From Mobula birostris (lineage: Eukaryota): a DNA stretch of 64,000 nt. The translations under genes were made by a program, and so were the position numbers. The stretch's first letter is position 1. Every line of letters begins with the position of its first letter. Where the stretch lies: NCBI RefSeq assembly GCF_030028105.1, contig NC_092384.1, positions 17,677,629-17,741,628 on the forward strand, given 5' to 3'. A model generated the notes under the pieces. The model worked only from the letters and a program-made list of their open reading frames with translations, was not told the origin of the DNA and ran no database searches. Shown piece after piece: positions 5,661 through 61,290 of this stretch.

Positions 5661-6056
5661 ATTTCTCATGGTCGTATGGTCCAATAATAGTACTAATGTT
5701 AGAGAAGTTGAAGTTTCGCATGTGATTGCAATCAAATTGATTGCCTAAAATCGTAACTCCTGACAGCTAACTAAAATCGCCAATTTACATCACAACGCTA
5801 AAATCTGCATCATCGCCCCGAACATCGACTTCTATCCAAATAACTCCCTCTGCATTATTAGTTTTTTTTTCATTTAGCGCTTTTTTTTAACTTGTTGGAA
5901 ATTTTGCTATGTAATACGCTACACACAAGTTCATATAGACTGTAAATAATGTAGAAGGAGTTCGTGGGAAAAATGCATTTCACATTTTGTTTCATGTTTG
6001 TACAGTTGTCCAGGTTCATTCAGTGCAGATCTTCCTTTCAATGTTTCCAGTCTAAT

Positions 6057-6344
6057 CTTGTTAGATAATACAGATGAGTCTGGCAGGAACGTTCACGATT
6101 CGTGAGATATCCGGTAAAAACAACTTTTCCCTGAGCAGGCTTTGCGTCTCCAGTGTGCTAGAAGCCTCATAAACTCCTTCTCATAAAAGTTCCGTTTATT
6201 ACGGCTTTTATCCTGGTTAGAATTTCTGTATTATTTTGTATCCAAAAGATTTCTGATTTATTTGGGTAAAAGGTTACAGTTTTACATTCCGGGAATTCGG
6301 TGAGGGCCCTTTATCACCAATGATTTTCAGCGGAGTTTGAGGAA
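6057..6344 (-). pseudogene. Paralogous C1 exon (copy 1), multiply frameshifted
   Basis: Starts PQTPLKIIG (identical CTCCGCTGAAAATCATT to copy 2); FYPNKSEIFW and GVYEASSTLE appear in shifting frames with stops; donor GT mutated to AT. Flanking introns resemble copy 2. Confidence 0.85.
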
Positions 6345-6434
6345 CTGCAACATAATAAAACACCAGATTGAATATTCAGCTATTATTTCAACGCATGTGT
6401 TCTCTGTCGAACAGTGGTATGCTGCCACTCCCAA

Positions 6435-7610
6435 TCTATATACTACTAAGACTCCCATGCTCTGTTTGTCTGTTTGTGACCTCCAATTAGCGCAAACGTT
6501 ACATTACATCGGCACTATTTTTGGCTAAATCGACTTAAATGCGCCATCTTACAGAATGCAGGCAAAGTTCAGGGTTATATATTCGTATAGAATGCTCACT
6601 TGTCAAAATCAACAGCCCCGCTTTCACCCGACAGCCGATGTCAGCCATGACGGAAACCGCGACGCGACACCACGACGCATGCGCACGGCCAGCCTTAGCA
6701 GCAACTCACGGTGCTCACAGCAGCGACACCGACCGGAGCAAAAGGACAAGGCAGCTCTATCTCCAGCGGTCACATTCTGCTAATCACCACCAGCATGGGC
6801 AGGATTGGGACAGATCAAACTAAATGAGATCAATAAGGGATAATTAAATTTATTGTAATGACGTACTTCGAGACACCCATCAAACCCTTTGCTACAGTCA
6901 AAGGACAGCAGTGACTATAACACGTCCATTTAGGAGAGCGCCAACCACATCACAAGAAAAATCTGCATCCTGGAGGCTTTGGTGTTACTGCTTCGTGTCT
7001 TCTATTCAGCATTAGGGTAAAAAAAAATATGCCGGGCGGAAAGAGAAGGGGGACATTATGGTTAAGAGATGACGCCAAACGTCGTCGGGAAGGGGCAAGG
7101 AGAGGAACAGAACGAGAATCGGATGAGGCCAGGGCAGTACGACTCTAATTTCAAAGAGTCAGGATAAAAAAGATGAGAGAATAAGAGACAGAAGAGGAGA
7201 GGCATGCACGTCTCCAAAATGACAACAACTGGCATAGAAGGAGGAGAGAGGAAGAGACAAAGAAGCTGAGAAATGCATGTCTCCAGATTCAGAGACAAAG
7301 AACAAACAGCAGAAAAGATGACGAGACGGGGGATGAAAGCACTGCACGTCTACAGAATGACAACGAGAGGCACAAGGGTGGCAGATCAACCAGAAATAAT
7401 GCCATCAAAAGCGTCCTTCGTTAACAGAGGCGGAGCTATATTTGCCTTGCTAAGCGTCGTTCTTCTTTAATAAACTGAGGTTTTCTTCTTCAATTTCCAA
7501 AGCAAAGCGATACCAATAGCATTCAGGAAAATTTAATGTTTATTCTGGTCACATCAGATTGCACTACCCTTCTCTCAAGCGGTGCCTCAATGGGTCGCCC
7601 CGTTGTCTAG
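6435..7610 (+). mobile_element. Non-autonomous Helitron (1176 bp)
   Basis: 5' TC, 3' CTAG preceded by hairpin CAATGGG-TCGC-CCCGTTG, inserted between A and T with no TSD; empty site visible in paralog at 36106/36107; decayed ETEEERHARL-type repeats. Confidence 0.85.
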
Positions 7611-7929
7611 TTGCTATTATTGCTGTTTCAAAACCACTGAGATTGTCATTTAATACTTTGTTTCACGGGGCAAGTAAATATGACCCAGCCAATCACAAGG
7701 CAAAACACAAACAAGGAAAAACTTAGTGCTGACTATAGGCGAGGAACGCGGGACTACTTGGAATGGACGAAGCAGATTTAGCGCGTGTTGACAGTAGCCC
7801 TTTATGTCTCCTTGCAACCGGCCATTTTTTCCACTCCTCTGCCCTTTCAGAGGTTCATTTTGTAATGACGCAAAATGAGTGGCAGTGACTGGAGTTGAGG
7901 AGCAAAGTTTCACACAGTGTTCCATCTCC

Positions 7930-8830: not shown

Positions 8831-8918
8831 TTGATGCCTCGAGAAAGAGTTCTAATCATAAACTTGGTACTACAGCGGAAGCATATGTTTGCCAACCACT
8901 CGGTTTCTATGTCTTGCG

Positions 8919-11130
8919 TGTCATGGTCCGGTCCGTAAAGTCCACATTCCGGTTCAGGGTCCGGTCCGTCGATCCATATTCCAGGTTTTCCAGGATTCCC
9001 TTGTCCTGTTGTGTTTCCAGTTTTCCCTTAATTGAGGCACATGATTCTCATTTTGATCTGGCTACATAAATAGCTCCTGGGTTCATTTCCTGGACTGTTC
9101 CCTTCCGTTCCCTTCACTTTCCTCTTCCTCCTGAAGTCTTGACTGCAAACTTCGTCTGAAGCCTTTTCTTGCAATCATGCCTGCAAACTTTGCCTGAAGC
9201 CTTGCATGCGTCCTCGCCTGTATCGCTTTCAAGCTCTACCGCCGGAGCAGGACCAGAGTTTTGTTGTGTCTTCATAAGGAACTGTCTATCGTTGTTTGGA
9301 ACTGTCTCTGTGTCCATGCCTTCAATAGGTAGGTCCGGCCACTTGCCGCTACCTTGTGTTGGGAACCTTCTTGTCGTATTCAGCATTCTGTGTATGAGCG
9401 CTAGGTGCTGTTCCCAAGGAGTGGTCCCGGCTCTGTCTTCTGTGTATGAGTCCTGGCTCTACGCCCTGTTCCCAAGGAGATGCCCCGGCTCATGTTCCAC
9501 GTTCCTGTCTCTCAATTCCAAGGCTCCGTGTTCTAGACCAAGGCTGCGAGCTTCTAGTCCTCGTCCAAGGCTACGAGCGCCCAGTCCTCGTCCTAGGCTC
9601 TCGGGTTCCTGTCTCCCAAGACCACGGTTCTGTGCTTCCTGTTCTTCCAAACCCAAGTCAGGGCTTCGGGGTGTCGTCCTGTCCTTGTGCCTCGCCCAGC
9701 CCAGGAGTACCTCGCCCTGTCCAGGAAAGCCTCTAAGAATCCAAGCCTCGTCCAGTCCTGTAGCCACGTCATGCCTTCGCCTAGTTCTGGAGTCTGAGCC
9801 CGAGTCAGGACCCAGGTTTTGGGTCCTTGTCCTGTCTATGGCTCGCAGTCCATACCCAAGCCTCGAAGAACCCAAGCCTCGTCATGTCCTCGTCTAGTTC
9901 CGAGGTCCGAACCGATTCAAGACCCAGGTCCTGGGTCCTTGTCAAGTCTCTGGCTCAGAGTCCAAGCCCAGGCTCCTGGTTCCAAGTTCCTTGTCCTGGT
10001 CCCACTTTCCTAGCCAAAGTCCTAGCCCAAGTCTATGTTTTTGTCCCAGTTCCTAGTCTGTGTCCTGTCATGTCTCTAACTCTAGTCCTAGTCCTGTTAC
10101 TATTACTTCAGAGACTGTGTCTTCCATTTGGGTCCGCTCCCAATGCCCCGTTATGACAGAATAGCCCAGTCATACATATATCCAGCGACATAGGCACTGT
10201 CGTGTTACTGTCGCCATCCTGGGTTCTCTCCTGTCGTAAGACCCCCCCGCCCCGCCCGCCCGTGTCGTCCATAGCCTTTTCGGTCGCCAAGAGCCTCCCA
10301 TTGAGGAGAGGTGGTACTGTCATGGTCCGGTCTTTGAAGTCCGTTTTCCGGTTCAAGGTCCGGTTCATCGATCCGTATGCAAGGTTTTCTGGTTTTCCCT
10401 TGTCCTTTTGTGCGCCTTAATTGAGACATATTATTCTCATTTTGGGATGGCTACATAAATAGCTCCTGGGTTCAGCTTCACTTGCTGGACTTTTCCCTTC
10501 CTTTCCCTTCACACTCCTCTTCCTCCTGAAGCCTTGCCTGAAGCCTTTGCCTGCAACTTTGCCTGCAACCTTTGCCTGAAGCCTTGCCCTCGTCATCGCC
10601 TGTATCGCTGTCAAGTTCTACAGACGGAGTAAGACCGAAGCCTTGCTGTGTCTTGATAAGGAACTCTCTATCGTTGTTTGGAACTGTATGTTTGTGTCCT
10701 GCCCTTCGCTAGGTAGTTCCGACCGTTTGCTGCTACCTTGAGTTGGGAACCGTCTCTGTGTCCACGTCTACGCTAGGTAGGTCTGGCCGTTTGCCACTAC
10801 ATTGTGTTGCGAACCGTCTCTTCGTGTTCAGCACTCTGTTTATGAGTCCCGGCCCTACGTCCTGTTCCCAAGGAGGGGTCCCGGCTCTGTGTTCCATGTT
10901 CCTGTCTCTCAAGTCCAAGGCTCCGTGTTCCCGTGCTCTCGACCTTGGCTCCAAGCGTCCAGTCCTCGTTCAAGGCTCCGAGATTCCTGTCTCCCAAGAC
11001 AATGGCTCTGTGTTTCCTGTTCTCCAAGGACCACGTCAAGGCTTCGCGGTCCCATCCTGTCTTTGTGCCTCGCCCAGCCCAGGAAAACCTCGAAGAATTC
11101 AAGTCTCATCCAGTCCTGTAGTCACGTCTT
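8919..11130 (+). mobile_element. Non-autonomous LTR element: LTR1 8919-10158, 159-bp internal region, LTR2 from 10318 truncated by CR1
   Basis: LTR1 runs TGTCATGG...TTATGACA; a second copy restarts TGTCATGGTCCGG at 10318 after purine tract GAGGAGAGGTGGTAC. Confidence 0.75.
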
Positions 11131-11139
11131 TTTTTCCAG

Positions 11140-14100
11140 CTATACATAGAGGCACCAACTATAGAAGGGGCACTGTTGGATCTCCTGTTAGGGAATGAGA
11201 TAGAACAGGTGATGGAGCTATGTGTTGGGGAGCACTTCAGGTAGCAGTGATCACAATATCATTAGTTTCAATATAATTATGGAGAAGGATCGGACTGGAT
11301 CCAGGGTTGAGATTTTTGATTGTAGAAAGGCTAACTTTGAGGAGGTGCGAAGGGATTTAGAAGGAGTGGATTGGGACAATTTATTTTATGGGAAGGATGT
11401 AATAGAGAAATGGAGGTAATTTAAAGGTTAAATTTTGCGGGTACAGGATCTTAATGTTCCTGTTAGGTTGAAAGGAAAGATTAAAGAGCCATGGTTTTCA
11501 AGGGATATAGGAAACGTGGTTCGGAAAAACAGGGGGATTTATAATAAATATAAGCAGCTTGGAGTTAATAAGGTGCTCGAGGAATATAAAGAATGTAAAA
11601 AGAATCTTAAGAAAGAAATTAGAAAAGCTAAAAGAAGATACGAAGCAGCTTTAGCAAGTAAGGTAAAAATAAATCCAAAGAGTTTCTACAGCTATATAAA
11701 TAGGAAAAGGATAGTGAGGGATAAAATTGGTCCCTTAGAGAATCAGAGTGGACGGCTATGTGCAGAGCCAAAAGAGATGGGGGAGATTTTGAACGATTTC
11801 TTTTCTTCGGTATTCACTAAGGAGAAGGATATTGAATTGTGTAAGCTAAAGGAAACAAGAAACCATAGAAACCATAGAAACTACAGCATAGAAACAGGCC
11901 TTTTGGCCCTTCTTGGCTGTGCTGAACCATTTTCTGCCTAGTCCCACTGACCTACACACGGACCATATCCCTCCATACAACTCCCATGCATGTATCTGTC
12001 CAATTTATTCTTAAATGTTAAAAAAGAACCCGCATTTACCACCTCATCTGGCAGCTCATTCCATACTCCCACCACTGTCTGTGTGAAGAAGCCCCCCACC
12101 CCCCCAATGTTCCCTTTAAACTTTTCTCCCCTCACCCTTAACCCATATCCTCTGGTTTTATTTCTCCCCTTGCCTCAGTGGAAAAAGCCTGCTTGCATTC
12201 ATTCTATCTATACGCATCATAATTTTATATACCTCTATCAAATCTCCCCTCATTCTTCTACGCCCCAGAGAATAAAGTCCTAATCTATTCAACCTTTCTC
12301 TGTAACTGAGTTTCTCAACTCCCGGCAACATCCTTGTAAACCTTCTCTGCACTCTTTCAACCTTATTTATATCCTTCCTGTAATTTGGTGACCAAAACTG
12401 AACACAATACTCCAGATTCGGCCTCATCAATGCCTTATACGACCTCATCATAACATTCCAGCTCTTATACTCAATACTTTGATAATAAAGGCCAATGTAC
12501 CAAAAGCTCTCTTTACGACCCCATCTACTTGTGACACCACTTTTAGGGAATTTTGTATCTGTATTCCCAGATCCCTCTGTTCTACTGCACTCCTCAGTGC
12601 CTTACCATTAACCCTGTATGTTCTACCTTGGTTTGTCCTTCCAACGTGCAATACCTCACACTTGTCTGTATTAAACTCATTCTGCCATTTTTCAGCCCAT
12701 TTTTCCAGCTGGTCCAAGTCCGTCTACAGGCTCTGAAAACCTTCCTCACTGTCTACTACACCTCAAATCTTTGTATCATCAGCAAATTTGCTGATCCAAT
12801 TTACCACATTATCATCCAGATCATTGATATAGATGACAAATAACAATGGACCCAGCACTGATCGTTGTGGCACACCACTAGTCACAGGCCTCCACTCAGA
12901 GAAGCAATTCTCTACCACCACTCTCTGGCTTCTTCCATCGAGCCAATGTCTAATCCAATATACCACCTCTCCATGTATACCTAGCGACTGAATTTTCCTA
13001 ACTAACCTCCCATGCAGGACCTTGTCAAAGGCCTTACTGAAGTCTATTCAGACAATATCCACTGCCTTCCTTTCATCCACTTCCCTGGTAACCTCCTCAA
13101 AAAACTCCAATAGATTGGTCAAACATGACCTACCATGCACAAAGCCATGTTGACTCTCCCTAAAAAGTCTCTGTCTATCCAAATGCTTGTAGATTCTGTC
13201 TCTTAGTACTCCCTCTAATAACTTACCTACTACCGACGTTAAACTCACCGGCCTATAATTTCCCGGATTACTTTTCGATCCTTTTTTAAACAATGGAACA
13301 ACATGAGCCACTCTCCAATCCTCCGGCACCTCACCCGTAGACAGCATCATTTTAAATATTTCTGCCAGGGCCCCCGCAACTTCAACACTAGTCTCCTTCA
13401 GGGTCCGAGAGAACACTCTGACAGGTCCCGGGGATTTATCCACTTTAATTTTCCTCAAGACAGCAAACACCTCCTCCTTTTCAATCTGTACAGTCCATGA
13501 TCTCACTACTTGATTCCCTCAATTCCATAGACTTCATCCCAGTTTCCTTAGTAAATACAGATGCAAAAAAACCTATTTAAGATCTCCCCCATTTCCTTTT
13601 GTTCTGCACATAGCCGACCACTCTGATCTTCAAGAGGACCAATTTTATTCCTTACAATTCTTTTGCTCTTAACATACCTGTAAAAGCTCTTTGGATTATC
13701 CTTCACTTCGACTGCCAAGGCAACCTCATGTCTTCTTTTAGCCCTCCTGATTACTTTCTTAAGTATTTTCTTGCACTTCTTATACTCCTCAAGCACCTGA
13801 TTTACTCCCTGTTTCCTATACATTTCATACAACTCCCTCTTCTTCTTTATCAGAGTTGCAATATCCCTTAAGAAGCAAGGTTCCTTATTCCTGTTCAATT
13901 TGCCTTTAATCCTGACAGGAACATACAAACTCTGCACTCTCAAAATTTCCCCTTTGAAGGCTTCCCACCTACCAATCACATCTTTGCCAGAGAACAACCT
14001 GTCCCAATCCACGTTTTTTAGATCCTTTCTCATTTCTTCAAAGTTGGCCTTCTTCCAGTTCAGAACCTCAACCCTAGGACCAGATCTATCCTTGTCCATG

Positions 14101-16420
14101 ATCAAATTGAAACTAATGGTGTTATGATCACTGGAACTGAAGTGCTCCCCTACACAGACTTCCGTCACTTGTCCTAACTCGTTTCCTAACAGGAGATCCA
14201 ATATTGCATCCCCCCTAGTTGGTCCCTCTATATACTGATTTAGAAAACTTTCCTGAACACATTTTACAAACTCTAAACCATCTAGACCCCTAACAGTATG
14301 GAAGTCCCAATCAATGTATGGAAAATTAAAATCCCCTAACACCACAATTTTATGTTTCCTGCAGTTGCCTGCTATCTCTCTGCAGATTTGCTCTTCCAAG
14401 TCTCGTTGACTATTGGGTGGTCTGTAATACAATCCCACTAATGTGGCCATACCTTTCCTGTTTCTCAGTTCCACCCATAAGGACTTAGTAGACAAGCCCT
14501 CTAATCTGTCCTGCCTGAGCACTGCTGTAATATTTTCCCTAACAAGCAATGCTACTCCCCCACCTTTCATTCCTCTGCCTCGATTACATCTGAAACATCG
14601 GAACCCTGGAATATTAAGCTGACAGTCCTGCCTCTCCTGTAGTCAAGTTTCACTAATTGCTATAACGTCATAATTCCAAGTGTCAATCCACGCCCTCAAC
14701 TCATTCGCCTTCCCCGCAGTACTCCTAGCATTGAAATATATACACCTCAGAAGATTTTTACCACCACTCACACCCTTTCATAAGGCTATTTATGGAAAGT
14801 AAGACGATTATAGAAGAGGAAGTACTGGCGCTTTTAAGGAATATAGAAGTGGATAAGTCTCCGGGTCTGGACAAAATATTCCCTACGACCTTGAGGGAAG
14901 TTAGTGTAGAAATAGTAGGGTCTTTGACAGAAATATTTCAAATGTCATTAGAAACAGGGATGGTGCCGGATGATTGAAGTATTGCTTATGTGGTTCCATT
15001 GTTTAAAAAGGGTTCTAAGAGTAAACCTAGCAATTATCGGCCTGTGAGTTTGACGTCAGCAGTGGGTAAATTGATGGAGAGTATTCTTAAAGTTGGTATA
15101 TATAATTATCTGGATAGACAGGGTCTGATTAGGAACAGTCAACATGGATTTGTGCGTGGAAGGTCATGTTTGACAAATCTTATTGATTTTTTTGATGAGG
15201 TTACCAGGAAAGTTGACGAGGGTAAAGTGGTGGATGTTATCTATATGGACTTCAGTAAGGCCTTTGACAAGGTTCCACACGGAAGTTTAGTTAGGAAGGG
15301 TCAATCATTAGGCATTAATATCGAAGTAGTAAAATGGATTCAGCAGTGGCTGGATGGGAGACACCAGAGAGTAGTGGTGGATAACTGTGTATCAGACTGG
15401 AGGACGGTGTGTAGCGGTGTGCCTCAGGGATCTGTACTGGGTCCAATGTTGTTTGTCATATATATTAATGATCTGGATGATGGGGTGGTAAAATGGATTA
15501 GTAAGTATGCACATGATACTAAGATAGGTGAAGTTGTGGATTATGAAGTAGGTTTTCAAAGCTTGCAGAGAGATTTATAACAGTTAGAAGAGTGGGCTGA
15601 AAGATGGCAGATGGAGTTTAATACTGAAAAATGTGAGGTACTACATTTTGGTAGGACTAATCAAAATAGAACATACATGGTAAATGGTAGGGCATTGAAG
15701 AATGCTGTAGAACAGAGGGATCTAGGAATAATGGTGCATAGTTCCCTGAAGGAAGAATCTCATGTGGATAGGGTGGTAAAGAAAGCATTTGGTATGCAGG
15801 CTTTTATTAATCAGAACATTGAGTATAGGAGTTGGGATGTAATGTTGAAATTGTATAAGGCATTGATGAGGCCAAATTTGGAGTATTGTGTGCACTTCTG
15901 GTCACCGAATTATAGAAAAGATGTCAACAAAATTGAGAGAGTACAGAGGAGGTTTACTAAAATGTTGCCTGGCTTTCATCTCCTAACTTACAGAGAAAGG
16001 TTGAACAAGTTAAGTCTTTATTCTTTGGAGCATAGAAGGTTGAGAGGGGACTTGATAGAGGTGTTTAAAATTATGAGGGGGATTGATAGAGTTGACGTGG
16101 ATGGGCTTTTTCCATTGAGAGTGGGGGAGATTCAAGCAAGAGGACATGAGTTGAGAGTTAAAGGGCAAAAGTTTAGGGGTAACATGAGGGGGAACTTCTT
16201 TACTCAGAGAGTGGTGGCTGTGTGGAACCAGCTTCCAGCAGAAGTGGTTCAGGCAGGTTCGATGTTGTCGTTTAAAGTTAAATTGGATAGATATATGGAC
16301 AGGAAGGGAATGGAGGGTTATGGACTGAGTGCGGGTCGGTGGGACTAGGTGAGAGTAGGAGTTCAGCATAGACTAGAAGGGCCGAGATGGCCTGTTTCCG
16401 TGCTGTAATTGTTATATGGA
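11140..16420 (+). mobile_element. CR1 LINE ORF2 (11140-11860 and 14780-16420), split by an antisense CR1
   Basis: Endonuclease/linker ends ...EKDIELCKLKET and resumes ESKTIIEEEVL..DKSPG; RT motifs (SKYAHDTK, RPNLEYC) and 3' tail. Confidence 0.9.
11861..14770 (-). mobile_element. CR1 LINE (antisense, nested), endonuclease to 3' tail
   Basis: 340-aa APE endonuclease ORF 13548-14570, RT ORFs, (TTTCTATGG)n tail at about 11861-11885. Confidence 0.92.
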
Positions 16421-16439
16421 AAAATATGAAAATTTTATG

Positions 16440-19400
16440 AAAAGCTGCTGGATATTCCCCCGACTATGGAGATTGAAATGGAGCATCGTTCACTCGTACC
16501 GCTGCCCTCTGGAGACAGAGAAAGTAAATTAGAAAAAATAATGTTTCTAAAACAGAGACACTATGAAATTGGATCTAAATCTATGAATATACTGGCGTGA
16601 AAATTGAAAAAAAATAGCAGAAAATACGATTCATAGAATTAGGGATCCGAGAACAAAAGTGATAAAAAAAAATAAGCGAACTGAAATTCAAGAAGCTTTT
16701 GAAATGTTTTAAATTTCTTGTGTAGCCAAACTATTAATTTCATTCTAATTTTTCAAGGTTGTCTCTAATGTATCCTGTGCCAAACTCAATTTGTGTTTTA
16801 TTTTTCTAGTTCTTTCAGCTTATTTTGTAATTCCTCTAATGTTTTATTCTTTTTTTTCCTTATATGAAGATATCGCGATAATTTTCCCTCTTAAGACAGC
16901 CTTATATATTCCCTCTATATTCCAAAGTTCCAGGGGAAGCATAACCCAAATTGGCATCTTCCTGAATTCTTTAGAAATACCCACTTTAAGCAAAGAACAA
17001 AACAAAATGATGACTGCTGACATAACTGAAGCTGAACTTCAAACTGCAATTAGTAGGCTTAAATTAAGCAAGTCAACAGGACCAGATGGATATACAGCAG
17101 AGTGGCATAAAGAGTTCAGAACTGAGTTAATTCCTGTTTCATTAGCCACACTGAACTGGGCCCAAAGAAAGGCGCAAATGCCACCCAACTGGAAGGATGT
17201 AATAATCTCAGCTATATCAAAAGAAGGCAAGAAAAAAATGGAATGTAGGTCATTTAGATCAATATTTGTTCTTAATGTGGATTATACAATATTTACTTCC
17301 ATCATGGCCAAACGATTAGAAGATTTTCTACCCACACTGATACACAAAGATCCGACAGGTTTTACACAACGCCAAACACAAGACAATATACGAAGGACAC
17401 TTCACATTATGGATCATATAAAAGAATGAAATTGAAGCAATAGTGACAAGCGTGGACGCTGAAAAGACATTTGATTCGGTTAATTGGAATTTTCTTTACA
17501 TAGTTTTAAATATATTTGGTTAACAGGACACAATTATTATAACTATACAGACACTATATGACAGTCCTACTGCCAGGATTAAAATCAATGGATATTTATC
17601 TAATAGTTTTACCCTAGAAAGGGGCAGGAGACAGAGTTGTGCATGGTCACCACTACTCTTTGCATTATATCTGGAAACATTAGCTCAACATGTCAGATAA
17701 AATGCAAGGGAATTAAAGGAACAGAACATAAATTGGCCTGTTGCGCGGATGACATTTTGATCTACCTAGGGCAACCAACATACTGTTTACCTAAATTGAT
17801 GCAATCCTTTGAAAAATATCAGGATCAACATCGATAAAACCCAAATACTTTCATTTAACTATTACCCACCAAGAGAAATTGAAAGTAGATATCCTTGGGC
17901 ATGGCAAACGGAGTCCGTCAAATATTTGGACATCACTATGACACAACATGAAATAGTACAGCACAGTATATGCCCTTCGGCCCACATTGTTCTGCCGACC
18001 CTAAAACCCTGCCTCCCATATAACGCCCCACCGTAAATTCCTCCATATAACTGTCTAATAGTCTCTTAAATTTCTCCAGCGTATTTGCCTCCACCACTGC
18101 CTCAGGCAGTGTATTCCACGCACCAATCACTCTCTGAGTAAAACACACGCCCTCGAATATCCCCCTTGAACTTCCCACCGCTTACCTTAAAGCCATGTCC
18201 TCTTGTATTGAGCAGTGGTCCCTGGAGAAGAGTTGCTGGCTGTCCACTCTGTCTATTCCTCTCAATATCTTGTATACCTCTACCATGTCTCCTCCCATCT
18301 TCCTTCCCTCTAAAGAGTAAAGCCCTAGCTCCCTTAATCTCTGATCATAATGCATACTCTCTGAACCAGGCAGCATCCTGGTAAATCTCCTCTGTATCCG
18401 TTCCAGTGTTTCCACATCCTTCCTACAGTGAGGCGAACAGAAATGGGCACAGTACTCCAAGTGTGGCCTAACCAGAGTTTTACAGAGCTGCATCATTACC
18501 TCGCGACTCTTAAACACTATCCCTCGACATGTGCAAGCTAACACCCCATAAGCTTTCTTTACTGCCCTATCTACCTGTGAGGTAACTTTCAGAGATCTGT
18601 GGACATGTACCCCAAGATCTCTCTGCTCTTCCACACTGCCAAGTATCCTGCCATTTACTTTGTACTCTGCCTTGAACTCCATCTGCCACATCTCAGCCCA
18701 CTTCTGCATCCTTTCAATGTTCCTCTGTAATCTTCGACAATCCTCTAAACTATCTACAACACCGCCAACCTTTGTGTTGTCTGCAAACTTGCCAACCCAC
18801 CCTTCTACCCCCACATCCAGGTTGTTAATAAAAATCACGAAAGGTAGAGGTCGCAGAACCGATTCTTGTTGGACAGCACTAGTCACAACCTCCAATCTGA
18901 ATGTACTCCCTCCACCACGACACTCTGCCTTCTGCAGCAAGACAATTCTGAATCCACCTGGTCAATCTGCCCTGAATCCCATGCCTTCTGACTTTGTGAA
19001 TATGCCTACCATGTGGAATACCTTGTCAAATGCTTTACTAAAATCTATATAGATCACATCCACTGCACTACCCCGATCTATATGCCTGATCACCTCCTCA
19101 AAGAACTCTATCAGGCTTGTTAGACACGATTTTCCCTTCACAAAGCCATGCTGACTGTCCCTGATCAGACCATGAATCTCTAAATGCCCATAGATCCTAG
19201 CTCTAAGAATTTTTCCAATAGCTGTCCCAGCACAGGTGTAAAGCTCACTAGTCTATAATTACCCGGAATATCCCTACTACCTTTTTTGAACAAGGGGACA
19301 ACATTCGCCTCCCTCCAGTCCTCCGGTGTCATTCCCGTAGACAACGAGGACATTAAGATCCTAGCCAGAGGCTCAGCAATCTCTTCCCTCAACTCATGGA

Positions 19401-21815: not shown

Positions 21816-22449
21816 GTAAGAAACCCGTGATGTCCGAATCAAACATAATTCAAATTGAATCGATTTCTACTTGCTTGGATATGGTCTACTTCGTCCCATT
21901 TTGTGCCTGTTCATGTGAATATTCGAATGTCTTTAACGGTTGTGATCATATCAGTATTCTCTGGTAGCACGTTCAAGTCAACAACCATTCTCTGTGTAAA
22001 ATACTTGCCATGTAAAGCTCACTTAATTTTTCCTCTTTTATCTCAAGGCGACGCCCTCCAGTAACTTACACTAATATTCCCGAGCTACACTCACTGAAAG
22101 AATGACAAGGCTAACATTATTAGGGAATCCCGTTTGACGAACGTATTAAGACACTGGTCAGGAGAAAGGAGTTCTGTATCTTCTACAGGGAACGGGCGCA
22201 CGTGCGCCCCTTCAGAACTATAAGAGATATTCTGGTACACTTTAGGGCAATCTTGACAGCTCAAAGATGGCATGAAATAGGTTGTAAAATATATTAAGAG
22301 GAAGTGAGGAAATAGCGACTCTGAAGGAACAGTGTGATCATTTTTGTGTGGAGCCACAGACGATGTCTGAGCTGCAGGTTATTATTTCTCATCTGTATAA
22401 CTGTGCTGAAAATCATTGCAGCGAAGGAATTAAGGGGAATTAATAGCAA

Positions 22450-24110: not shown

Positions 24111-24329
24111 TTTAAATCTTTGAAAAGTGGGTCCAAGACCAAAGGGAACCTAACATGACTTATTACTGTAGGCTTCTTCTTCCCTTCTCTTATCTCCAGC
24201 TATCAAACAAATTCTCGGTCCGATCCAACACGTTACTTTTAGTTCCCAGTGTTCTCATTTTACACATATGTCAAACATTTTCAAGAAGTTCTCTGAAAAT
24301 AGTTTTCACATCAGTAATAGAAGAGATTT

Positions 24330-30610: not shown

Positions 30611-30616
30611 TCAACA

Positions 30617-44550: not shown

Positions 44551-45410
44551 GGAGGTGATGAAGCTATAATTTTCAAGTTGTCTTCGCCTCTCAGGAAATT
44601 TTTCATTCCATTTCGATTTACATATTTTGATTCGAAACAAACTGATGTCTTCATCCATTTTAATACAACTTTGACGACACTTAAAAGTCATTTATGTCAT
44701 TCTACAATCTAGCTCGGTTGTGAAATTAATTACACAAATAAAAATCCTTTTATTCATAGAACGGCCACTTCTTTGTTTCAGTATGCGATCTGACGTCTAT
44801 ATCCGACGACATTTCATTATTCTCTGCCTTAAATGAAAATAAACCGCAATCATTCTCCAAATAGTCGCTCGCGATGTAACCTTTCACGCTTGGAAGGTTG
44901 TCAGTAATCGATATGGTTAAAAATTAAAACTTAAAGCTCTGTTTTATTTCATATTGTGATGAAGCCTCTCATTTTTCTCTTTCCAGAATGCACACGTCGT
45001 AGAATCGAAACACGGATTTTGCAGAAAAAAAACATTAGAAACATTTAGTTGCGAGGAAGAGGCTTTGAAGACACCTTTTAAAAAAGTAATCCATTGTCTG
45101 TAACCTAAAGGTCGAGCTTTTAAAAACAAAGCCAACAGTCCGCAAATCGATTTTTGAGACACGTAAATTTTAACCACGAAGTCTTTCCATGATATCATCA
45201 GCGGGCTCGTTAGTGCATTTTTATTCTCTCCGATTTGTAATTTCCTGTTGACTTGCACGTGGAGTTTGTTGTAGATCTTTAGCTGAAAGAAAACATTGAA
45301 TCCTGGAGTGCTTCACGGAAAAGGACTCTTCCAACCGTTCCATCCATTCAGAGCGAAGTATTTACGTAGCCGTTCTTATACCTGCTTCCAGCATGGGACC
45401 ACTACCTCTC

Positions 45411-47370: not shown

Positions 47371-49259
47371 CATATTTGCTTGAGAAAGTAGTCCACTCTT
47401 GTGACCTTGCTCTTCAGAGGAATGACAAATGGCTACTTGTGTTTTAAATGAGTAGATGAAGAAATGAAAAGGTAAGGTAAGAGTACAAAGTTCCTGTCAA
47501 CTACGAAGACGATATAATTGTGCGTCTTTACTTGAAAGTAAATATCAAAACAATATTTAACGGTGGAGAAATCGACGATATTTGAGATATGATGTGATCT
47601 AGGAAAAGGAAGAGAATAAATGATTATCAAAGGGAAATCTATCCCAGCCAGCATATCCAGCAGAACAGGTCTGAGCGGCCCACTCTTGTTTCTCTATTAT
47701 TTTCGCGTAATTCTCTGGATTGCCGAAACTCTTTCAGGAATGATGGTTGATTGCATTATCAGTCAGATGATTTATTTCACTGCCGATGTTCTCTGTACCA
47801 ACTCCCCACCATTCTTAGTCCCGTATCTTATCCACCAACCAGGCTGACCTGATGAGTAACAATAATGTATTATTCCACCAGGATGCTCACCCTGTTCTGT
47901 CACACATACATCTACCTGGACCGGAATTAATGAGTCATTTTACGACTATTGGCCAAATAAATGCTGGGCATAATTCAGATTTATTTTGTTCCATTGGGCA
48001 ATTGGGCAGTTACTAATCGCCGAGGAGCTCTGTCCAAAGCACTATATTCTTCGAGGGTACACATCTAGACACGTGATTCCAATATAAATCTACTTTCCAG
48101 CGTCCACGTTTTTCAGGCAAATGTTCTGATTAGGCTAAATCTAATTTCCTTTAATATGACCATGTGCGCATCTCCCCTGCTTTAATGTGGGCTGGGACAG
48201 GTACATAGGTTGCGATGCATTTCTCTTGCATTCTGGGTGCCCTGGGATTTCTGTTACTACCATGTGATAGTGCAGTTATATTTTTCAGATCATTTTGAAC
48301 AGTAAGCCGTGAATGTATATGAAACAGAAGAAAACTGAATATTTTATCATGCGACATTTTCTGATCAATATTCAGACACGGAGATATTATCGCGAGAACA
48401 TGTTGCGATGTTTTTCACATCTCCAAATCTGTATTTCTCTCGGTTGAACGTTGACATAAGTGGTGAAGGATAACTGTACAGTTGGCGTTTTTTACCCTGC
48501 AAACAAAGTTTCTGTCACTGGTGATGACGAATTTCTGATTTTTTTTTTCATCCTCTGAAGACTGTGAAGAGAATATCTTGGGGGGCGTTCGGCGGTACTT
48601 AAGGCAAAGTAGGTTTATTTCATAGAATGACTGGGGACTGTTCAATGATATAGCAGAGGAGAATATGTTTGAGCATATCAGACATTACCCTCTTGAACGA
48701 CATGGCTGTAGAGGGAGGCGGAATGGCTTATTTCCAATCCTATTCTTAAATTTCTTACTTTTATCTTTTTTACAGTGACAATCGCCTCTAATGAATCGAA
48801 GACGAAATTGATCCCTTATCTTCCTAACTTCTACATGTGATATCGATTAATAATCTTTGCCTGGATGCAAGAATTGAAAAGAAACAATGCCTCGGGCCTG
48901 CACTCATTAATCGTCAATAGCTTCGAACTGCAGTTGGATTCTCAGCTTCACAGTTTCTTTGATGGATTACATCTGCGTACAATGTTTGCTTATTTTGATG
49001 TTCGGATGCTGAGGTGTTCTTGGAATCGGAAAGCTGCACAGCAGCGTATGTCAGTTTGTCAGCTCCATTTCTCTAAGTCAGTGAAAATATTTCAGAATCA
49101 GCGTTTAATCGATAATCCATTGAGTTGAAAAAAAATCCAATCAAAAATTGTAAAAGAAATTAGTGATGCATTCATAAATCATCAATTTTAGATTTCTACC
49201 GTTTTACACCTGGAAGGGCATGTGTAGTACTTGTTCCACTTACAAGCATAAGTGCCGGG

Positions 49260-49960
49260 AAGGAGTATCCTTGTACATGCCCTTACACGTCCTCCCTCAC
49301 CACCATTCAGGGCCCCAGACAGTCCTTTCAGATGAGAAGACATTTCGCCTGTGAGTCGGTTGGGTTAATATACTGCGTCCGGTGCTCCCGATGCGGCCTT
49401 CTGTATATTGTCGACACCCGACGCAGGCTGGCAGACTGTTTCTCTGAACACCTACGCTCTGTCCGCCAGAGACAGCAGGATCGCCTAGTGGCCACACATT
49501 TATATCCATGTCCCATTCCCGTTCTGATATGTCTATCCACGGCCTTCTCTACTGTCACACTCAGGTTGGAGGAACAACACCTTATATTCCGTCTGGGTAG
49601 CCTCCAACCTGATGGCATGAACATTGACTTCTCTAACTTCCATTAATGCCCCACTTCCCCTTCATACCCCATCCTTTCTTTCTCATCCTATGGGCTCCCC
49701 TCCCCTTTTCCTTCTTTCTCCCCAGGCCTCCTCTCCTTTCTCCAGCCTGGCACCCCTTTTGCTAATCAACTTTCCAGCTCCTTGCTCCAACCCTCCCCCT
49801 CCTGTCTTCTACGATCATTTCGGATCTGCCCCTCCCCCTCCCACTTTCAAATCTCTTACTATCTCTTCTTTCAGTTAGTCCTGACGAAGAGTGTCTGCCC
49901 GAAACGCCGACTGTGCCTCTTCCTATAGATGCTGTCTGGCCTGCTGCGTTTACCAACAAT
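49260..49960 (+). mobile_element. Penelope-like element, GIY-YIG endonuclease end
   Basis: CESVGLIYCVRCSRCGLLYIVDTRRRLADCFSEHLRSV...IFRLGSLQPDGMNIDFSNF. Confidence 0.85.
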
Positions 49961-51300: not shown

Positions 51301-51529
51301 TCTTATGTTATTCATGGCAATCTCTCTGCTTTACCTGAGAATAGATAATACATTCTCCTTGCTGTCGATCTTTTTGAGTAATAGAAAAGGATTTTAAAAA
51401 ATGGTTGGAAGATCATTTTGTCCGCGTATAATGATATTGTCCGTATATCATCTTTTTCAACTTACGTTATTTGTTGTATTTTTCACGGTAATACGTTGAA
51501 ACTGCACCCTCTCTAACATACTGGTGGAG

Positions 51530-54087: not shown

Positions 54088-56632
54088 CAGAGGCATGCAA
54101 AAGTTTGGGCACCCCGGTCAAAATTTCTGTTACTGTGAATAGTTAATTGAGTAGAAAATGAACTGATCTCCAAAAGTCATAAAGTTAAAGATGAAACATT
54201 ATTTTCAACATTTTAAGCAAGATTAGTGTATTAAAATTGTTTTGTACAATTTTAGAGTGGAAAAAAAGAAAAGGAGCGCCATGCAAAAGTTTGAGCATCA
54301 CAGGAGGTTTGAGCTCTCTGATAAATTTTCCCAAGTTCTCAGATCTTAATTAGCTTGTTAGGGATATGGATTGTTCACACTTATCGTTAGGAAAAGCCAG
54401 GTGATTCAAATTTCAAAGCTTTATAAAAACCCTGACTCCTCAAACCTTGTCCCAACAATCAGCAGCCATAGGCTCCTCTAAGCAGCTGCCTAGCACTCTG
54501 AAAATTAGAATAAATGATGCCCACAAAGCAAGACAAGGTTATACGAAGATAGCAAAATTCTGGAAGGAAATATCACACCGTCTATAGAAAAAAAAGCTGA
54601 AGATGAAGAGAGGATGGCTTCTACAACAGGATAATGATCCTAAACACACCTTAAAATCCACAATGGACTACTTCAAGAGGCGCAAGCTGAAGGTTTTGCC
54701 ATGGCCCTCACAGTCCCCGGACCTAAACATCATCGAAAATCTGTGGATAGAACTCAAAGGAGCAGTGCATGCAAGACGGCCCAAGAATCTCACAGAGCTA
54801 GAACCCTTTAGCAAGGAAGAATAGGCGAAAATCCACCAAACAAGAATTCAAAGGCTCCTTGCTAGCTACAGAAAGTGTTTACAAGCTGTGATACTTGCCA
54901 AACTGGATGTTACTAATTACCGACCATGCAGGGTGCCCAGACATTTGCTTCGGGACCTTTTTCTTTTTTTTTTGTTATTTTGAAACTGTAAAAAATGGCA
55001 ATAAAAAAGTAATCTTGCTTAAAATATTAAAGAAATGTGTCAACTTTATCTTTATGTCTTTTGGAAGTCAGGTCATCTTTTACCATAGAAACCATAGAAA
55101 CTACAGCACAGAAACAGGCCTTTTGGCCCTTCTTGGCTGTGCCGAACCATTTTCTGCCTAGTCCCACTGACCTGCACACGGACCATATCCCTCCATACAC
55201 CTCCCATCCAAGTATCTGTCCAATTTATTCTTGAATGTTAAAAAAGAACCCGCATTTACCACCTCCTCTGGCAGCTCATTCCATAATTCCACCACTCTCT
55301 GTGTGAAGAAGCCCCCCCCCCAATGTTCCCTTTAAACTTTTCCCCCCTCACCTTTAACCCATGTCCTCTGGTTTTTTTCTCCCCTTGCCTCAGTGGAAAA
55401 AGCCTGCTTGCATTCACTCCATCTAGACCCATCATAATTTTATATTCCTCTATCAAATCTCTCCTCATTCTTCTACGCTCCAGAGAATAAAGTCCTAACC
55501 TATTCAACCTTTCTCTGTAACTGAGTTTCTCAAGTCCCGGCAACATCCTTGTAAACCTTCTCTGCACTCTTTCAACCTTATTTATATCCTTCCTGTAATT
55601 TGCTGACCAAAACTGAACACAATACTCCAGATTCGGCCTCATCAATGCCTTATACAACCTCATCATAACATTTCAGCTCTTATACTCAATACTTTGATTA
55701 ATAAAGGCCAATGTACTAAAAGCTCTCTTTACGACCCTATCTACCTGTGACGCCACTTTTAGGGAATTTTGTATCTGTATTCCCAGATCCCTCTGTTCTA
55801 CTGCACTCCTCAGTGCCTTACCAGTGACCCTGCATGTGCTGCCTTGGTTTGTCCTTCCAACGTGCAATACCTCACATTTGCCTGTATTAAACTCCATCTG
55901 CCATTTTTCAGCCCATTTTTCGAGCTGATCCAAGTCCCTCTGCAGGCTCTGAAAACCTTCCTCACTGTCTACTACACCTCCAATCTTTGTATCATCAGCA
56001 AATTTGCTGATCCGGTTTACCACATTATCATCCAGATCATTGATATGGATGACAAATAACAATGGACCCAGCACTGATCCCCGTGGCACACCACTAGTCA
56101 CAGGCCTCCACTCGGAGAAGCAATTCTCTACTACCACTCTTTGGCTTCTTCCAGTGAGCCAATGTCTAATCCAATTTACTACCTCTCCTTACGACTGAAT
56201 TTTCCTAACTATCCTCTCATGCGGGACCTTGTCAAAGGCCTTACTAAAGTCCATATAGACAATATCCAGTGCCTTCCCTTCATCCACTTTCCTGGTAACC
56301 TCCTGGAAAAACTCCAATAGATTGGTCAAACATGACCTACCACGCACAAAACCATGTTGACTCTCACTAATAAGTCCCTGTCTATCCAAATACTTGTAGA
56401 TTTTGTCTCTTAGTACTCCCCCCAATAACTTACCTACTACCGACGTTAAATTTACAGGCCTATAATTTCCTGGATTACTTTTCGATCCTTTTTTAAACAA
56501 CGGAACAACATGAGCCACTCTTCAATCCTCCGGCACCTCACCTGCAGACAGCAACAGCTTAGCTATTACTCGCTTAGCTATTCACAGTAACAAAAATTTT
56601 TACCGGGGTGCCCAGAGTTTTGCATGCCACTG
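54088..56632 (+). mobile_element. Tc1/mariner element interrupted by CR1
   Basis: TA-flanked TIRs CAGAGGCATGCAAAAGTTTGGGCACCCC / GGGGTGCCCAGAGTTTTGCATGCCACTG; transposase remnant QQDNDPKH...[15 protein letters not shown]. Confidence 0.92.
55082..56550 (-). mobile_element. CR1 nested in Tc1
   Basis: RT ORFs 55256-56518; same tail family as 11861 and 63630. Confidence 0.92.
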
Positions 56633-57538
56633 TATTACCGTTCATCTTGATGCAACCGGTTACGAACGAGTGTGGAATCCTGGAAGAATATAGGAAGCAG
56701 ATTCTACAAGAATATTCAAATACATATTGGATATATACTTCAAAATAAAGAGTTGTCAGGAAGTTTCATTCTTCCCTACTGCGTTCCAAATGTTAGAAGA
56801 AAATAAATTTATATTTTCGCTGCTGTATGTGTAGTCCTCTCTGCAAGGAGACAAGCCTCATCACCTATCGGCTCTTTAGTCTGACATCTGTCCATAGAAA
56901 CTGTGTTAATCCCCGAAGAAAAGTAAAATAAATTATTTGCATTGTAAACACTGGACATTATTCGTTTGATACCAATCGAATTAATTGCGTAAGAGGAACT
57001 GCTGAATGTACGGATCTTTCAGAAAGCATTTTATCTTAATGCAGTTGTCTTAATACAGTGCATCAAAATCATTACATAACGCTCAACAGTCTTCGACTTT
57101 TAAAGAAGCCGTAAAGTGATAATAGCATACGAGTGGCTGTACTACATTTAAATACTGCTACTAAACTGCAAATTAAAATCAATGAGACATGCACGAGTTC
57201 GTCAATGTTTTTTACACAGTCACAGTAAACATAGACCTATGCCAAGCTGCTTACGCTTCAAAATCTGGATCTGCCATTCTATTGAAAACGACATTTGAAG
57301 TATTCCAAAGGGATATAACGGCATTTCTGAACAAGATACAGCATGTAAATACAGCTAGTGGACTGGTGAAATTATTGCTTCTATTGTGCCTGATAATTAT
57401 TTATGTAATCCGGTTCGAACATCTCAATCTCTGTCTAATCATGCTGTAATGACATTTATTCTTTTTGAAGTTAAATTTCTTTAGCGCTTCTATTGTGCGC
57501 GAATAGAGGTGATATTTCTCAGCGATCAGGGTCCTTAC

Positions 57539-57646
57539 CGTGCAATCTTTTAAACTTGACTTTCACCAAAGCTATTATCAGAGCTAAAATTGCCGATCCG
57601 CCCACTGCACATGCCGGAATCAATTTAGTATTAACGCCCTTTGGAT
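57539..57646 (-). pseudogene. Paralogous TM exon (copy 3) with mutated acceptor
   Basis: DPKGVNTKLIPACAVGGSAILALIIALVKVKFKRLHG; same 108-nt length as the intact copy; donor GTAAG intact; acceptor position reads TG (57648-57647). Confidence 0.8.
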
Positions 57647-58212: not shown

Positions 58213-58498
58213 CTTGCTCCTGTATGTAGCTGAAACTGGCAGGCACCGAGAGGGAGACATGTGACACCAAACAGGTGTTTTCTCCAAGTAGACTGCGTGG
58301 TTCGCAATAAACTAAAAGTTTCGTACAAGCCGTCCACGCTTCGGTTTGTCACACTTTCTATTCCAGTGAGAATTTGCTTGTTATTTCTTTGCCAAACGAT
58401 TTCTAATTTCTCCGGGTAGAAAGCAGTCGTTTTGCAAAGGAGCTTTCGAGGAGACGAAAACCCTCCATCAGGAACAATTTCCAAAGGAGTTGGAGGAG
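58213..58498 (-). pseudogene. Paralogous C1 exon (copy 3), frameshifted
   Basis: PPTPLEIV...LLCKTTAFYPEKLEIVW...GLYETFSLL in one frame, then TCLVSHVSLSVPASFSYIQEQ in another. Length 286 nt vs 297 nt: one codon shorter plus an 8-nt deletion before ACC TGT. Splice sites intact. Confidence 0.85.
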
Positions 58499-60009
58499 CT
58501 TGAGTAAAAACAAAATTATATTGGGTATTTCAGATCCATTTCAGTGCAGGTAGATTCTTTTAACTCCCGACCATCTAGCATGACACGCTAACAATAAAAT
58601 TAGTTACCCGCCAGTATTGACCAGTATTTAATAAATTCTTTCAATTTCATGTTTTGTTTATCATTGCTAAACATTCACACACACACCCAAGCGAAACATT
58701 GTTCTTCTCGGACCAGGTTGCAAAATAGAGTATATATAGTCACACACAGCACATGTAGTTACCATCCAGCACTGACAGTCACAAAATAAGCAAAATAAAA
58801 TGCAGTCCGTTTGGGAGAATGATAATAAGAAGAGTTCAGAGAATACACCTCGACGGCGAAGTGAGGAAGATATTCTCTCTTGAATGGTATTTGAGCATTA
58901 TTGCACAGTTGGGTTTGCGGTGGGCGTTAGCTTTGGAAACCTGGCTACTTATGGATTTTTCACTTCGTATCAAGACTGAGCTACAAAACCCAAAATATCA
59001 CAGATTTCTATAGTACGAATGCACATGGAATTGAATATTCTGGCAGCTTAATGCTTAGGGAGTGTATCAGGTCTTGGGTTTCAGTTTTCTAGTCATAAAC
59101 GTTCAGTAATAGAACTTTCCCCGGAATTTGAACCATTCCTGGAACAGTTCCCCCATACGGAATGTGACAAATCATCTTCTCCGTGAAACAGCCAGGAACG
59201 CAAATGCAAATTGATACTAATCGCATTGATTCTCTCGTTCTATTCTTTCTAAAGTCTGAAGTCCTGCAGCAAAATGGTCAACAGTGACTTGGCACTGCTA
59301 TAGGATCGCTTGTGGAAATGATGCCTTGCAGAGGGTCAAACAGAAACTGAACAACCTCAATTTCACCATGCACAGAGTTTACTAAAACGTGAGCCCAGTT
59401 TTAAGGATTTGTGAACGTGGACCGCTTCCACTACAGCTATGGTCGGTGTCTAACAGGGTGATTCAATAGTTAGATTGCTTTATCTGTTTATCACAGCAGT
59501 TAGGATTTCGCTCTGCTTACAGTAGCCATCCGGAACTCACAGCTGCCCGACGCCACGTCCCACGCCTATACCGATGTCAACGTTCTTGGCCTTCTCAAAT
59601 TCTAGGTGACGGGCAACTCTAGGGTTAAAAAATCTAAGGGCTTCTGCAGATACACTAAGCATAACGAGACAGAGACAGATAAAACTGATCCATTTGAAGA
59701 TCAGCGGGTTTAACAATGCACGGGGCGGAAAGAGATGGGAGGGGGGCATATCGTATTTATTTCCATTCGTATTTGTTCGGGAGACGTACACAGAAACTAT
59801 ACAATTAAGGCAACACAGAAGCAATGCCATGGCCCATATACGGTTTACAGCCCTGAGGCAAATTAGGGTGCAGAAGTTCCCAGAACATGGCAAGGTGTCC
59901 CATTGGACCTTGTTGGAAGCTATGCAGAAAATGAAAGGGCTCCGATAGAGCGATTCAAAATGTCCTTACCCGTGGGTGAAATGTCGGAGGACAAGAGTAT
60001 AACTAATGT

Positions 60010-60780
60010 TTTATGACCATATGACAATGGGATATCGGAGCCGAACTAAGCCATATGGCCCACCAAGTCTGCTCTGCCATTTCATCCTAGATAATACTTT
60101 CTGCTCAGCTCCAATCTCCTGCCTTCTCCCTGTAGCTCTTCATGCTTTAACCAATCAAACATCTATTAACCTCTTCTTTAAATATCCATAAGCACTTGGT
60201 CTCCATAGATGCCTGTGGCAAAAAAACAATCCACTGGTTCTACACTCTCTGGCTATAGGCATTCCTTTTCATCTCCTTTTAAAAAGGATTCCCCTCTATT
60301 CTGAGGCTGCGTCCTCTGGTCTTAGACTCTCCCACCATTGGAAACATTCTCTCCACATCCACACTATCAAGTACTTTCAACTTTCAATAGGGTTTAATAC
60401 GGTCGCCCCTATTTTTTTTTCTAAATTATAATGAAAACAGGCCCAGAGCCATAAAACGCTCTTCATATGACTAGTTATTGAATTCTGGAATCATTGTCGT
60501 GAACCTCCTTTGAACGCTTTCCAGATTCAACACGTTCTTTCCAAGATAAGGGGCCTAAAATTACTCACAATACCCCGTGACTCATCACCAGTGCTTTATA
60601 ATGTCTCACCATTACATCAACACAGACAGAATATTCTGGTGAACGCAGGAGGCCAGGCAGCATCTATCGGCAGAGGTACAGTCGACGTTCCGGGCCTGGA
60701 CTCTTCGTCAGGACTAATTGAAAGAATAGATAGTAAGAGATTTGAAAGTGGGAGGGGGAGGGGTGATCCGAAATGATAGG
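60010..60780 (-). mobile_element. CR1 3' fragment plus Penelope terminal fragment
   Basis: CR1 tail at about 60020-60080; CTCTTCGTCAGGACTAA motif as at 49870-49900 (reverse complement). Confidence 0.75.
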
Positions 60781-61290
60781 GGAACTCAGGAAGGGTTTTA
60801 TGCCGCGTCGGGTACGGACAGTGTTACAATGAAAAATTTGTTTCTCTTGATAATTTCCTTCAGGGTTTGGTTATAAAAGTTTGACTAATAAACTACTGCT
60901 TAATGTCTGGATTTCAAAACAGAAAGGAAAATGATGAACAAGACCGGTTTGAACTACAAGTACATTCCCTCGGACGTCGTCATGCATGTGTCTCCGGTAC
61001 AATGTGTGATTTTGGATTCTGAGTATTGATGACAAATAGAACAATATATGGTTGCGTATTCGGCCTATTACTTCAGCAATTTCCATATAATTTAAACGCT
61101 TACGTTTCATGAAACAAAAGCATATAATGTGAAACCTTCATAAATTTATTCCAGTGACAGATTTCAGTCTGTTGTGTTTTTTTTTCAAAGAAGACCTGAA
61201 GATCGTTACTCGCTGCCGTGACCAGTTCGCGCGAAAAACTCAGCGAAAAGCAACAACAAAGGTTGTCTGTGATAAAAATATATTCCGGGT
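60780..61290 (-). pseudogene. Possible relic leader/intron/5' V-exon region of copy 3
   Basis: Patchy similarity to the leader-V intron and V acceptor of the intact gene (TTCATCATTTTCCTTTCTGTTTTG vs TTCATCATTCTCACTTATGCTTTG). Candidate exon start at 60906 runs into stops and abuts a TE at about 60780. Confidence 0.35.

Follow-up and report, generated by a model that had tools for sequence, protein, structure and literature searches.

We analyzed a 64,000-nucleotide stretch of DNA from the ray Mobula birostris (contig NC_092384.1, positions 17,677,629 to 17,741,628 of the forward strand; G+C about 42%), referred to here as the window. It holds parts of three immunoglobulin (Ig)-type receptor genes, all of them on the minus strand throughout, which are named by their C1-set exons: copy A lies on the side of the 6-kb C1 exon, copy B in the middle, and copy C on the side of the 58-kb C1 exon. 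Taken as a whole, the window is very probably a record of one intact V(J)-C1-transmembrane receptor gene with immunoreceptor tyrosine-based inhibitory motifs (ITIMs), copy B; of an old, decayed duplicate of about 20 kb, copy A; and of a pseudogene from an older lineage of the same family, copy C.

A previous interpretation made from the letters of the window alone (the sequence-only reading) had listed three C1 exons, two transmembrane (TM) exons of 108 nt and several duplicated blocks, and had taken only the middle copy to be intact. Its coordinates were accurate to within a few bases, with the low ends of the C1 exons (6057, 35728, and 58213) exact. Both TM exons (n = 2) were recovered at their full length, and a self-comparison of the window reproduced each duplicated pair that had been named. 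The middle copy is indeed alone in being intact; the C1 exons of A and C are frameshifted and copy B translates to an annotated protein. Pfam assigned C1-set domains to B and C (E = 1e-8 to 6e-9) and a V/I-set domain to the sole V exon. No extra V, C1, or TM exon was found in the window by an unfiltered family hidden Markov model (HMM; --max) or by two motif scans. The features are collected in Table 1.

Table 1 Gene parts, duplicated blocks, and transposons of the window, in window coordinates (K2P, Kimura two-parameter distance; LINE, long interspersed nuclear element).
Feature	Position	Strand	Remarks
Copy B gene	29867-44341	-	nine coding exons, GT/AG sites; ends agree exactly with the recorded 14,475-bp gene span
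B exons 1 and 2	44263-44341, 41373-41453	-	upstream exons
B leader exon	39611-39685	-	
B V exon	39119-39424	-	J motif included; Pfam V/I-set
B C1 exon	35728-36024	-	Pfam C1-set, E = 9.6e-9
B TM exon	32193-32300	-	108 nt
B cytoplasmic exons	31373-31416; 30740-30850; 29867-29953	-	second with LAYATL; third with LTYAAL, then stop
5' region of unit B	40429-45409	-	upstream exons and introns of gene B
Copy A C1 exon, pseudogene	6057-6344	-	75% nucleotide identity to B exon; likeness continues into both introns
A V-C1 intron remnant	7606-7888	-	collinear with B 36103-36255 and 38187-38274
87-nt non-coding element	5691-5777	-	79% identical to B 31772-31858; lowest-coordinate A/B homology found
5' region of unit A	21899-26105	-	collinear with B 40429-45409; K2P 0.30-0.42
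Start of unit A	28609-29189	-	paralogous to 48477-49209
Orphan pseudo last exon	28946-29100	-	duplicated from the 49.0-kb exon; second unit starts here
Clade-II-type last exon, probably of C	48917-49072	-	76% identical to P0157 tail
C second cytoplasmic exon, possible relic	51318-51377	-	IIYSQV-type motif; weak match, 70% over 61 nt, E = 0.004
C first cytoplasmic exon relic	56821-56913	-	tblastn with P0157 and P0017; weak match, 48% identity
Copy C TM exon	57539-57646	-	108 nt; TG at the position of B's acceptor AG
Copy C C1 exon, pseudogene	58213-58498	-	90% identical to paralogue P0157 over 92 columns
LINE fragment block	11800-21400	.	endonuclease, reverse transcriptase, zf-RVT; expected site of A leader and V exons
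LINE (reverse transcriptase)	36262-38181	+	in B V-C1 intron; absent from unit A
Young LINE copy	55082-56553	.	93% identical to 11862-13346; inside copy C

Copy B is the intact gene

The exons of copy B translate exactly to the 395 residues of M. birostris XP_072135435.1, which NCBI names 'uncharacterized protein'. Relatives carry working labels here; P0185 is this protein, P0157 is XP_072135230.1, and P0186 is XP_072135223-225. Exons 1 and 2, together with the start of exon 3, are probably 5' untranslated region (UTR) read as coding, because close paralogues start at the methionine of the leader exon. A J-like motif of the form G-x-G-x-x-L-x-V was sought at the end of the single V exon, and this exon ends in the J-like FGNGSGSQLIVL, followed by a phase-1 donor. 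No recombination heptamer (CACAGTG or CACTGTG) was found in the 38.9-39.7 kb interval around it. The published hallmarks of C1-set domains are 13 residues from the B-strand Cys to the C-strand Trp, an (F/Y)(F/Y/H)P motif in the BC loop, and x-V-x-H after the F-strand Cys (PMC2785349); the C1 domain of B shows this spacing of 13 residues as well as FYP and C-L-V-S-H. The TM segment holds no charged residue. Two ITIMs, LAYATL and LTYAAL, lie in the tail, and the VVYAKT between them is not a canonical ITIM. The open reading frame (ORF) ends ahead of a last Tyr motif that the Narcine orthologue and clade-II members keep.

When compared with solved structures, the ectodomain of B matched Ig light chains and SIRP alpha and gamma chains about equally (E = 1e-15 to 1e-11); the SIRP alpha and gamma chains scored E = 1.5e-11, and Ig light chains were equal or better. 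Matches to the V domain in the ESM Atlas were generic Ig clusters only. We infer that B is an inhibitory receptor, in which the non-rearranging V domain with its built-in J motif would bind ligand, the single C1-set domain would serve as a stalk, and LAYATL and LTYAAL would recruit SH2 phosphatases. In a same-species run labelled RNA, one spliced piece of a 364-nt contig lies on 32190-32302, at the TM exon, with other parts elsewhere; this contig also spans the second cytoplasmic exon of B. A second RNA-like contig stops close to the last-exon acceptor.

Several further observations were made in and around gene B. A repeat encoding a '...GSLQPDGMNIDFS' peptide is present in four copies, at 3723-3809 (+), 24752-24793 (-), 44222-44341 (-), and 49515-49634 (+); one of them accounts for the first coding exon in the annotation of B, and the N-terminal extension is therefore probably not real protein. 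Contigs from an RNA-labelled run (28388-28578 and 28900-29100) match without mismatch downstream of the B stop codon, so that the 3' UTR of B, or read-through transcripts, may cover the orphan pseudo-exon located there. Very high-copy short repeats resembling short interspersed nuclear elements occupy 31464-31773 and about 32500-32630 in the introns of B, with a summed contig depth of about 2 million in DNA runs and ample presence in RNA-labelled runs as well. The C1-TM intron holds a tandem pair of 323 nt (34287-34609 and 34610-34941, 80% identical), adjoining an ORF that resembles a LINE endonuclease and has no Pfam match. At 30784, in the second cytoplasmic exon, one related-species DNA contig carries a 1-nt insertion (depth 12.5 of 18.5), which, if real, would shift the frame ahead of the last ITIM. 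In M. hypostoma, the gene of model P0002 spans 65 kb and the tail of the model is unrelated, which would fit this insertion if the contig comes from that species.

Copy A and the 20-kb duplication

What is left of copy A as a gene is its C1 exon, which together with its flanks (5969-6408) matches 35631-36088 of copy B at 73-74%. It retains FYP and the Cys-Trp spacing. Its lesions are a 7-bp deletion, a 4-bp insertion, two deletions of 1 bp, and one of 4 bp that takes out the second Cys; it also has in-frame stops, and the donor GT has become AT. The family HMM scan of the window found no leader, V, TM, or tail exon of A, and for A and C together tblastn, the family HMM, and motif scans gave no V, TM, or tail exon beyond those in Table 1. 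At the expected site of the A V exon lies a G+C-rich local duplication (8919-9714 and 10318-11092, 77% identical, offset by 1.4 kb), whose ORF has no match in Pfam.

Beyond the exon, copies A and B are joined by a chain of non-coding homology. In a blastn self-comparison, 21899-26105 and 40429-45409 form a collinear chain at 65-73% identity (E = 0 to 1e-86), within which tblastn of P0002 and P0185 locates relics of the two 5' exons of B at 24752-24793 and 22926-23006. Further upstream, 28945-29189 matches 48952-49209 at 71%. The A intron remnant corresponds to the B intron minus its LINE insertion. The 87-nt element sits outside an adjoining high-copy repeat; it was considered as a small exon and rejected, since all frames are closed. 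In order, the chain thus runs from 21.9-29.2 kb (against 40.4-49.2 kb) through the intron remnant at 7.6-7.9 kb to the C1 exon with its flanks and the 87-nt element.

Three copies of a last exon, at 49.0, 29.9, and 29.0 kb, define the boundaries of the units. K2P is 0.35-0.38 between the 29.0- and 49.0-kb exons, 0.62-0.78 between the 29.0-kb exon and the 29.9-kb exon of B, and 0.54-0.73 between the 29.9- and 49.0-kb exons. The 29.0-kb exon, which is frameshifted and has its first Tyr replaced by Cys, is therefore the partner of the 49.0-kb exon, and the chain resolves into two units. Unit B comprises the 49.0-kb last exon, which belongs to the gene upstream, intergenic DNA and 5' region, and gene B, from 49.2 to 29.2 kb (20 kb); unit A comprises the orphan last exon (29.0 kb), 5' region, and gene A. 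Between the units, K2P is 0.30-0.42 for the larger pieces and 0.20-0.33 for three short ones, and this similarity along the chain fits a single duplication event. The units differ in length because of later LINE insertions and deletions. The duplication unit of roughly 20 kb proposed by the sequence-only reading is thus borne out for the A/B pair, by the homology chain and by matching K2P; copy C is not a further repeat of it.

Very probably, one old tandem duplication, presumably by unequal crossing-over, copied about 20 kb: the last exon of the upstream neighbor, the intergenic and 5' region, and a whole B-type gene. The second unit would then have decayed, losing its leader, V, TM, and tail exons while LINEs filled about 10 kb. 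The crippled C1 exon of A, the non-coding homology, and the orphan 29.0-kb exon would be its remains.

Copy C is a pseudogene of a separate lineage

Copy C, which lies upstream of B, is damaged in every exon found, bar one weak relic. Its C1 exon keeps the C1-set hallmarks apart from a frameshift: an 8-bp deletion shifts the frame just ahead of the second Cys, and a 3-bp deletion is in frame. The TM exon lacks the acceptor dinucleotide, and the next AG downstream yields a stop codon. In the first cytoplasmic relic the motif Tyr has become His. The 49.0-kb last exon keeps LTYAAV and TLYADV, with a 1-nt frameshift ahead of the conserved SKKL-stop end, which is found in another frame. No V exon of C was found up to 64 kb of the window. 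The RNA-labelled runs contained next to none of the words of the C stretch, which is no proof of silence.

A maximum-likelihood tree was built from 53 C1 domains, with A and C read through and X placed at every break. Copy A falls in a starred clade (98/88; clade I) with B, the M. hypostoma orthologue of B, P0186 and P0187, and Hypanus P0004; Narcine is sister of the clade holding A and B. Copy C is placed apart from these, in another starred clade (clade II; 26 sequences, 100/99), nearest to M. birostris P0157. In approximately unbiased (AU) tests, monophyly of A, B, and C was rejected (p = 5.8e-5), as was a grouping of A with C (p = 0.004). The likeness of B and C is confined to exons (C1 66%, TM 59%), and their introns share no homology. 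Copy C is a representative of a different, older lineage of the same family.

The duplication is old and turnover slow

Related-species contigs span 28.3-34.3 kb in the same order, orphan exon included, and differ from the window at 112 of 4608 sites (2.4%). The distance between units A and B (K2P 0.30-0.42 vs 0.024) is 12-17 times, or about 15 times, this between-species divergence. An upstream exon of a Hypanus gene model is 73% identical to unit B and 52% to unit A, which places the duplication before the Hypanus-Mobula split. The C1 tree holds six orthologue pairs of M. birostris and M. hypostoma; sequences therefore group by lineage and not by species, the pattern of birth-and-death rather than of concerted evolution. 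Birth-and-death had been proposed by the sequence-only reading, and the orthologue grouping, with two pseudogenes and an orphan exon beside a live gene, agrees with it. The rapid turnover proposed along with it does not hold, as the A/B split is some 15 times deeper than the species divergence and the relics are shared in structure with one related species; turnover here has been slow.

Weighing the alternatives

In a version that extends the sequence-only reading, three tandem repeats of one 20-kb unit would have arisen locally and recently and would turn over fast, as at KIR or NITR loci. The C1 exons do recur every 22-30 kb on one strand, and the non-coding blocks are offset by 18.5-20 kb. 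Such a history is nonetheless very unlikely: it would predict one clade for A, B, and C, which the AU test contradicts by placing C in another old lineage, and it sits poorly with a B-C likeness limited to exons, with 1:1 M. hypostoma orthologues in each lineage, and with the depth of the A/B split. Equally improbable to us is that the non-coding 'duplications' are shared transposons beside three unrelated C1 neighbors. LINE copies account for many of the repeats in the window, the blocks at 3.7-5.66 kb and 49.5-51.0 kb match in the manner of a repeat family, and an element at 24.3-25.1 kb within the duplicated block is present four times. However, A and B are collinear over at least 17 kb across exons, introns, and intergenic DNA with order and orientation kept, divergence is uniform along the chain, and most of the chain has a single partner in the window. 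Least credible of all is an assembly artefact, whether uncollapsed haplotypes or a misjoin. The window has a single run of N, an assembly gap at 64-214, but the copies are 25-40% apart, far beyond the allelic level, and the related-species contigs, from independent runs, show the same order over 28.3-34.3 kb.

We thus favor an intact gene B, an old 20-kb duplicate A, and a pseudogene C of an older lineage. Several points weigh against parts of this reading. Both intermediate exon relics of C match weakly, the 49.0-kb exon is assigned to C from order and similarity only, and its V exon, instead of having been lost, may sit past the 64-kb edge. An exclusive pairing of A with B is not clearly rejected (AU p = 0.078), and the exact place of A within clade I is unsure because its branch is long (0.5). 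The duplication may be on the order of 100 million years old, an uncertain and uncalibrated figure. For copy B, the RNA evidence consists of assembled contigs from runs whose label 'RNA' was guessed, and low-depth contigs also fall in introns and downstream; for these reasons expression of B is supported, not proven.

The wider family and possible partners

Copy B is an annotated member of a cartilaginous-fish V(J)-C1-TM family, in whose tree A and C, both dead, are nested. Searches returned about 90 named relatives, all from rays, sharks, or chimaera. The family is known from automatic annotation only, and no published description of this ray and shark receptor family was found in the literature searched. 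Its machine-given names clash (SIRP-like, NCR3LG1-like, Ig lambda-like, tapasin-related-like, MHC II-like), with full forms such as 'tyrosine-protein phosphatase non-receptor type substrate 1-like', 'natural cytotoxicity triggering receptor 3 ligand 1-like', and 'immunoglobulin lambda-1 light chain-like'. From chimaera to rays, members share the exon plan and a KLTYA(A/S)L tail motif followed by a final xxYAx(V/L). Of the TM exon and the LTYA(A/S)L ITIM tail typical of the family, B has both, C damaged versions, and A none.

The 86.2-Mb record to which the window belongs (GCA_030028105.1) carries at least ten annotated paralogues from M. birostris, seven of which have accession numbers in sequence (XP_072135221-231), and in M. 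hypostoma the orthologue of B closes a consecutive accession series. This order of accessions, which is not a map, suggests that the array continues past the window edges. No neighbors were listed within 10 kb of P0157, P0152, P0002, or P0185. With one live gene, decayed paralogues, and annotated paralogues on the same record, the multigene immune-receptor cluster anticipated by the sequence-only reading is supported; an array of this kind is commonplace among families of immune genes.

Activating partners had also been raised as a possibility. We defined a classical activating partner by a short tail and a charged TM residue for adaptor pairing. P0186 and P0187, at 80% identity to B, have V, C1, and TM parts and end just past the membrane in a short tail with no Tyr motif; this tail-less paralogue is kept in both Mobula species, outside the window, and its TM segment has no charged residue. 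P0162 (Lys) and P0176 (Asp), clade-II members also outside the window, carry a TM charge, yet have long tails with Tyr motifs. A tail-less paralogue of B thus exists elsewhere on the chromosome, and the charged residue expected of an activating partner is missing from it. This paralogue could act as a decoy or partner of B.

Comparison with known receptor systems

KIR, LILR, and NITR loci resemble this array in being tandem clusters of inhibitory and activating Ig-type genes with pseudogenes and birth-and-death evolution. KIR have C2/I-type domains and lie in the leukocyte receptor complex, and NITR have V and I domains and occur only in bony fish. Membership in KIR or NITR, the analogy drawn by the sequence-only reading, is contradicted by the second domain of B, which is C1-set by Pfam, and by the host, a ray; nor does the locus show any sign of fast turnover.

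The nearest published concept is PRARP, with which B is compared by description; the named relatives of B that were found are all Chondrichthyes. Besides its V domain, PRARP reportedly carries ITIMs, a TM region, and a C1 domain. The architecture of B fits this description of PRARP, which passages of PMC10751288 and PMC11599192 (citing J Immunol 202:1992, 2019) present as a gene that does not rearrange and has V and J joined in one domain. SIRP alpha, beta, and gamma, discussed elsewhere as antigen-receptor-like (PMC2785349), share with B an N-terminal V domain followed by a C1-set domain, and include both ITIM-bearing and tail-less relatives. They differ in their V-C1-C1 plan, with two C1 domains, whereas B has a single C1 exon between V and TM. 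UrIg and UrIg2 are non-rearranging VJ-C1 genes of elasmobranchs (PMC12227049); as we understand that paper, which mentions neither ITIM nor SIRP, they bear multiple constant domains and pair into antibody-like dimers. Proteins with more than one C1 domain reached no more than 25-32% identity to B in the C1 search.

More speculatively, slow elasmobranch change may have kept a duplication older than the stingray-manta split alignable, and the family may be a SIRP/PRARP counterpart near the stock of the rearranging receptors, a proposal that we regard as doubtful. If it is true, the stepwise loss of tail, exon, and gene in VJ-C1 inhibitory receptors could be reconstructed from this locus and its sister clusters. 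For annotation, the 'uncharacterized protein' comes from a real receptor gene of inhibitory type, and gene predictors could wrongly merge the adjoining two pseudogenes and orphan exon into models. For evolution, the locus offers an internally consistent, dated case of slow birth-and-death in a cartilaginous-fish V(J)-C1 receptor family.

Transposon copies in the window

Two pairs of matching blocks, 11862-13346 with 55082-56553 and 3.7-5.66 kb with 49.5-51.0 kb, are transposon copies and not paralogy of units. The latter pair was considered as a further unit and rejected: 5063-5524 is nearer to an inverted copy at 60150-60617, as would be seen in a repeat family. Inverted LINE copies were also found at 16086-16419 and 36272-36604. 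At 92-93% identity, the copies of the 16086/36272 and 11862/55082 pairs are far younger than the gene duplication and show that LINE insertion into the cluster is ongoing.

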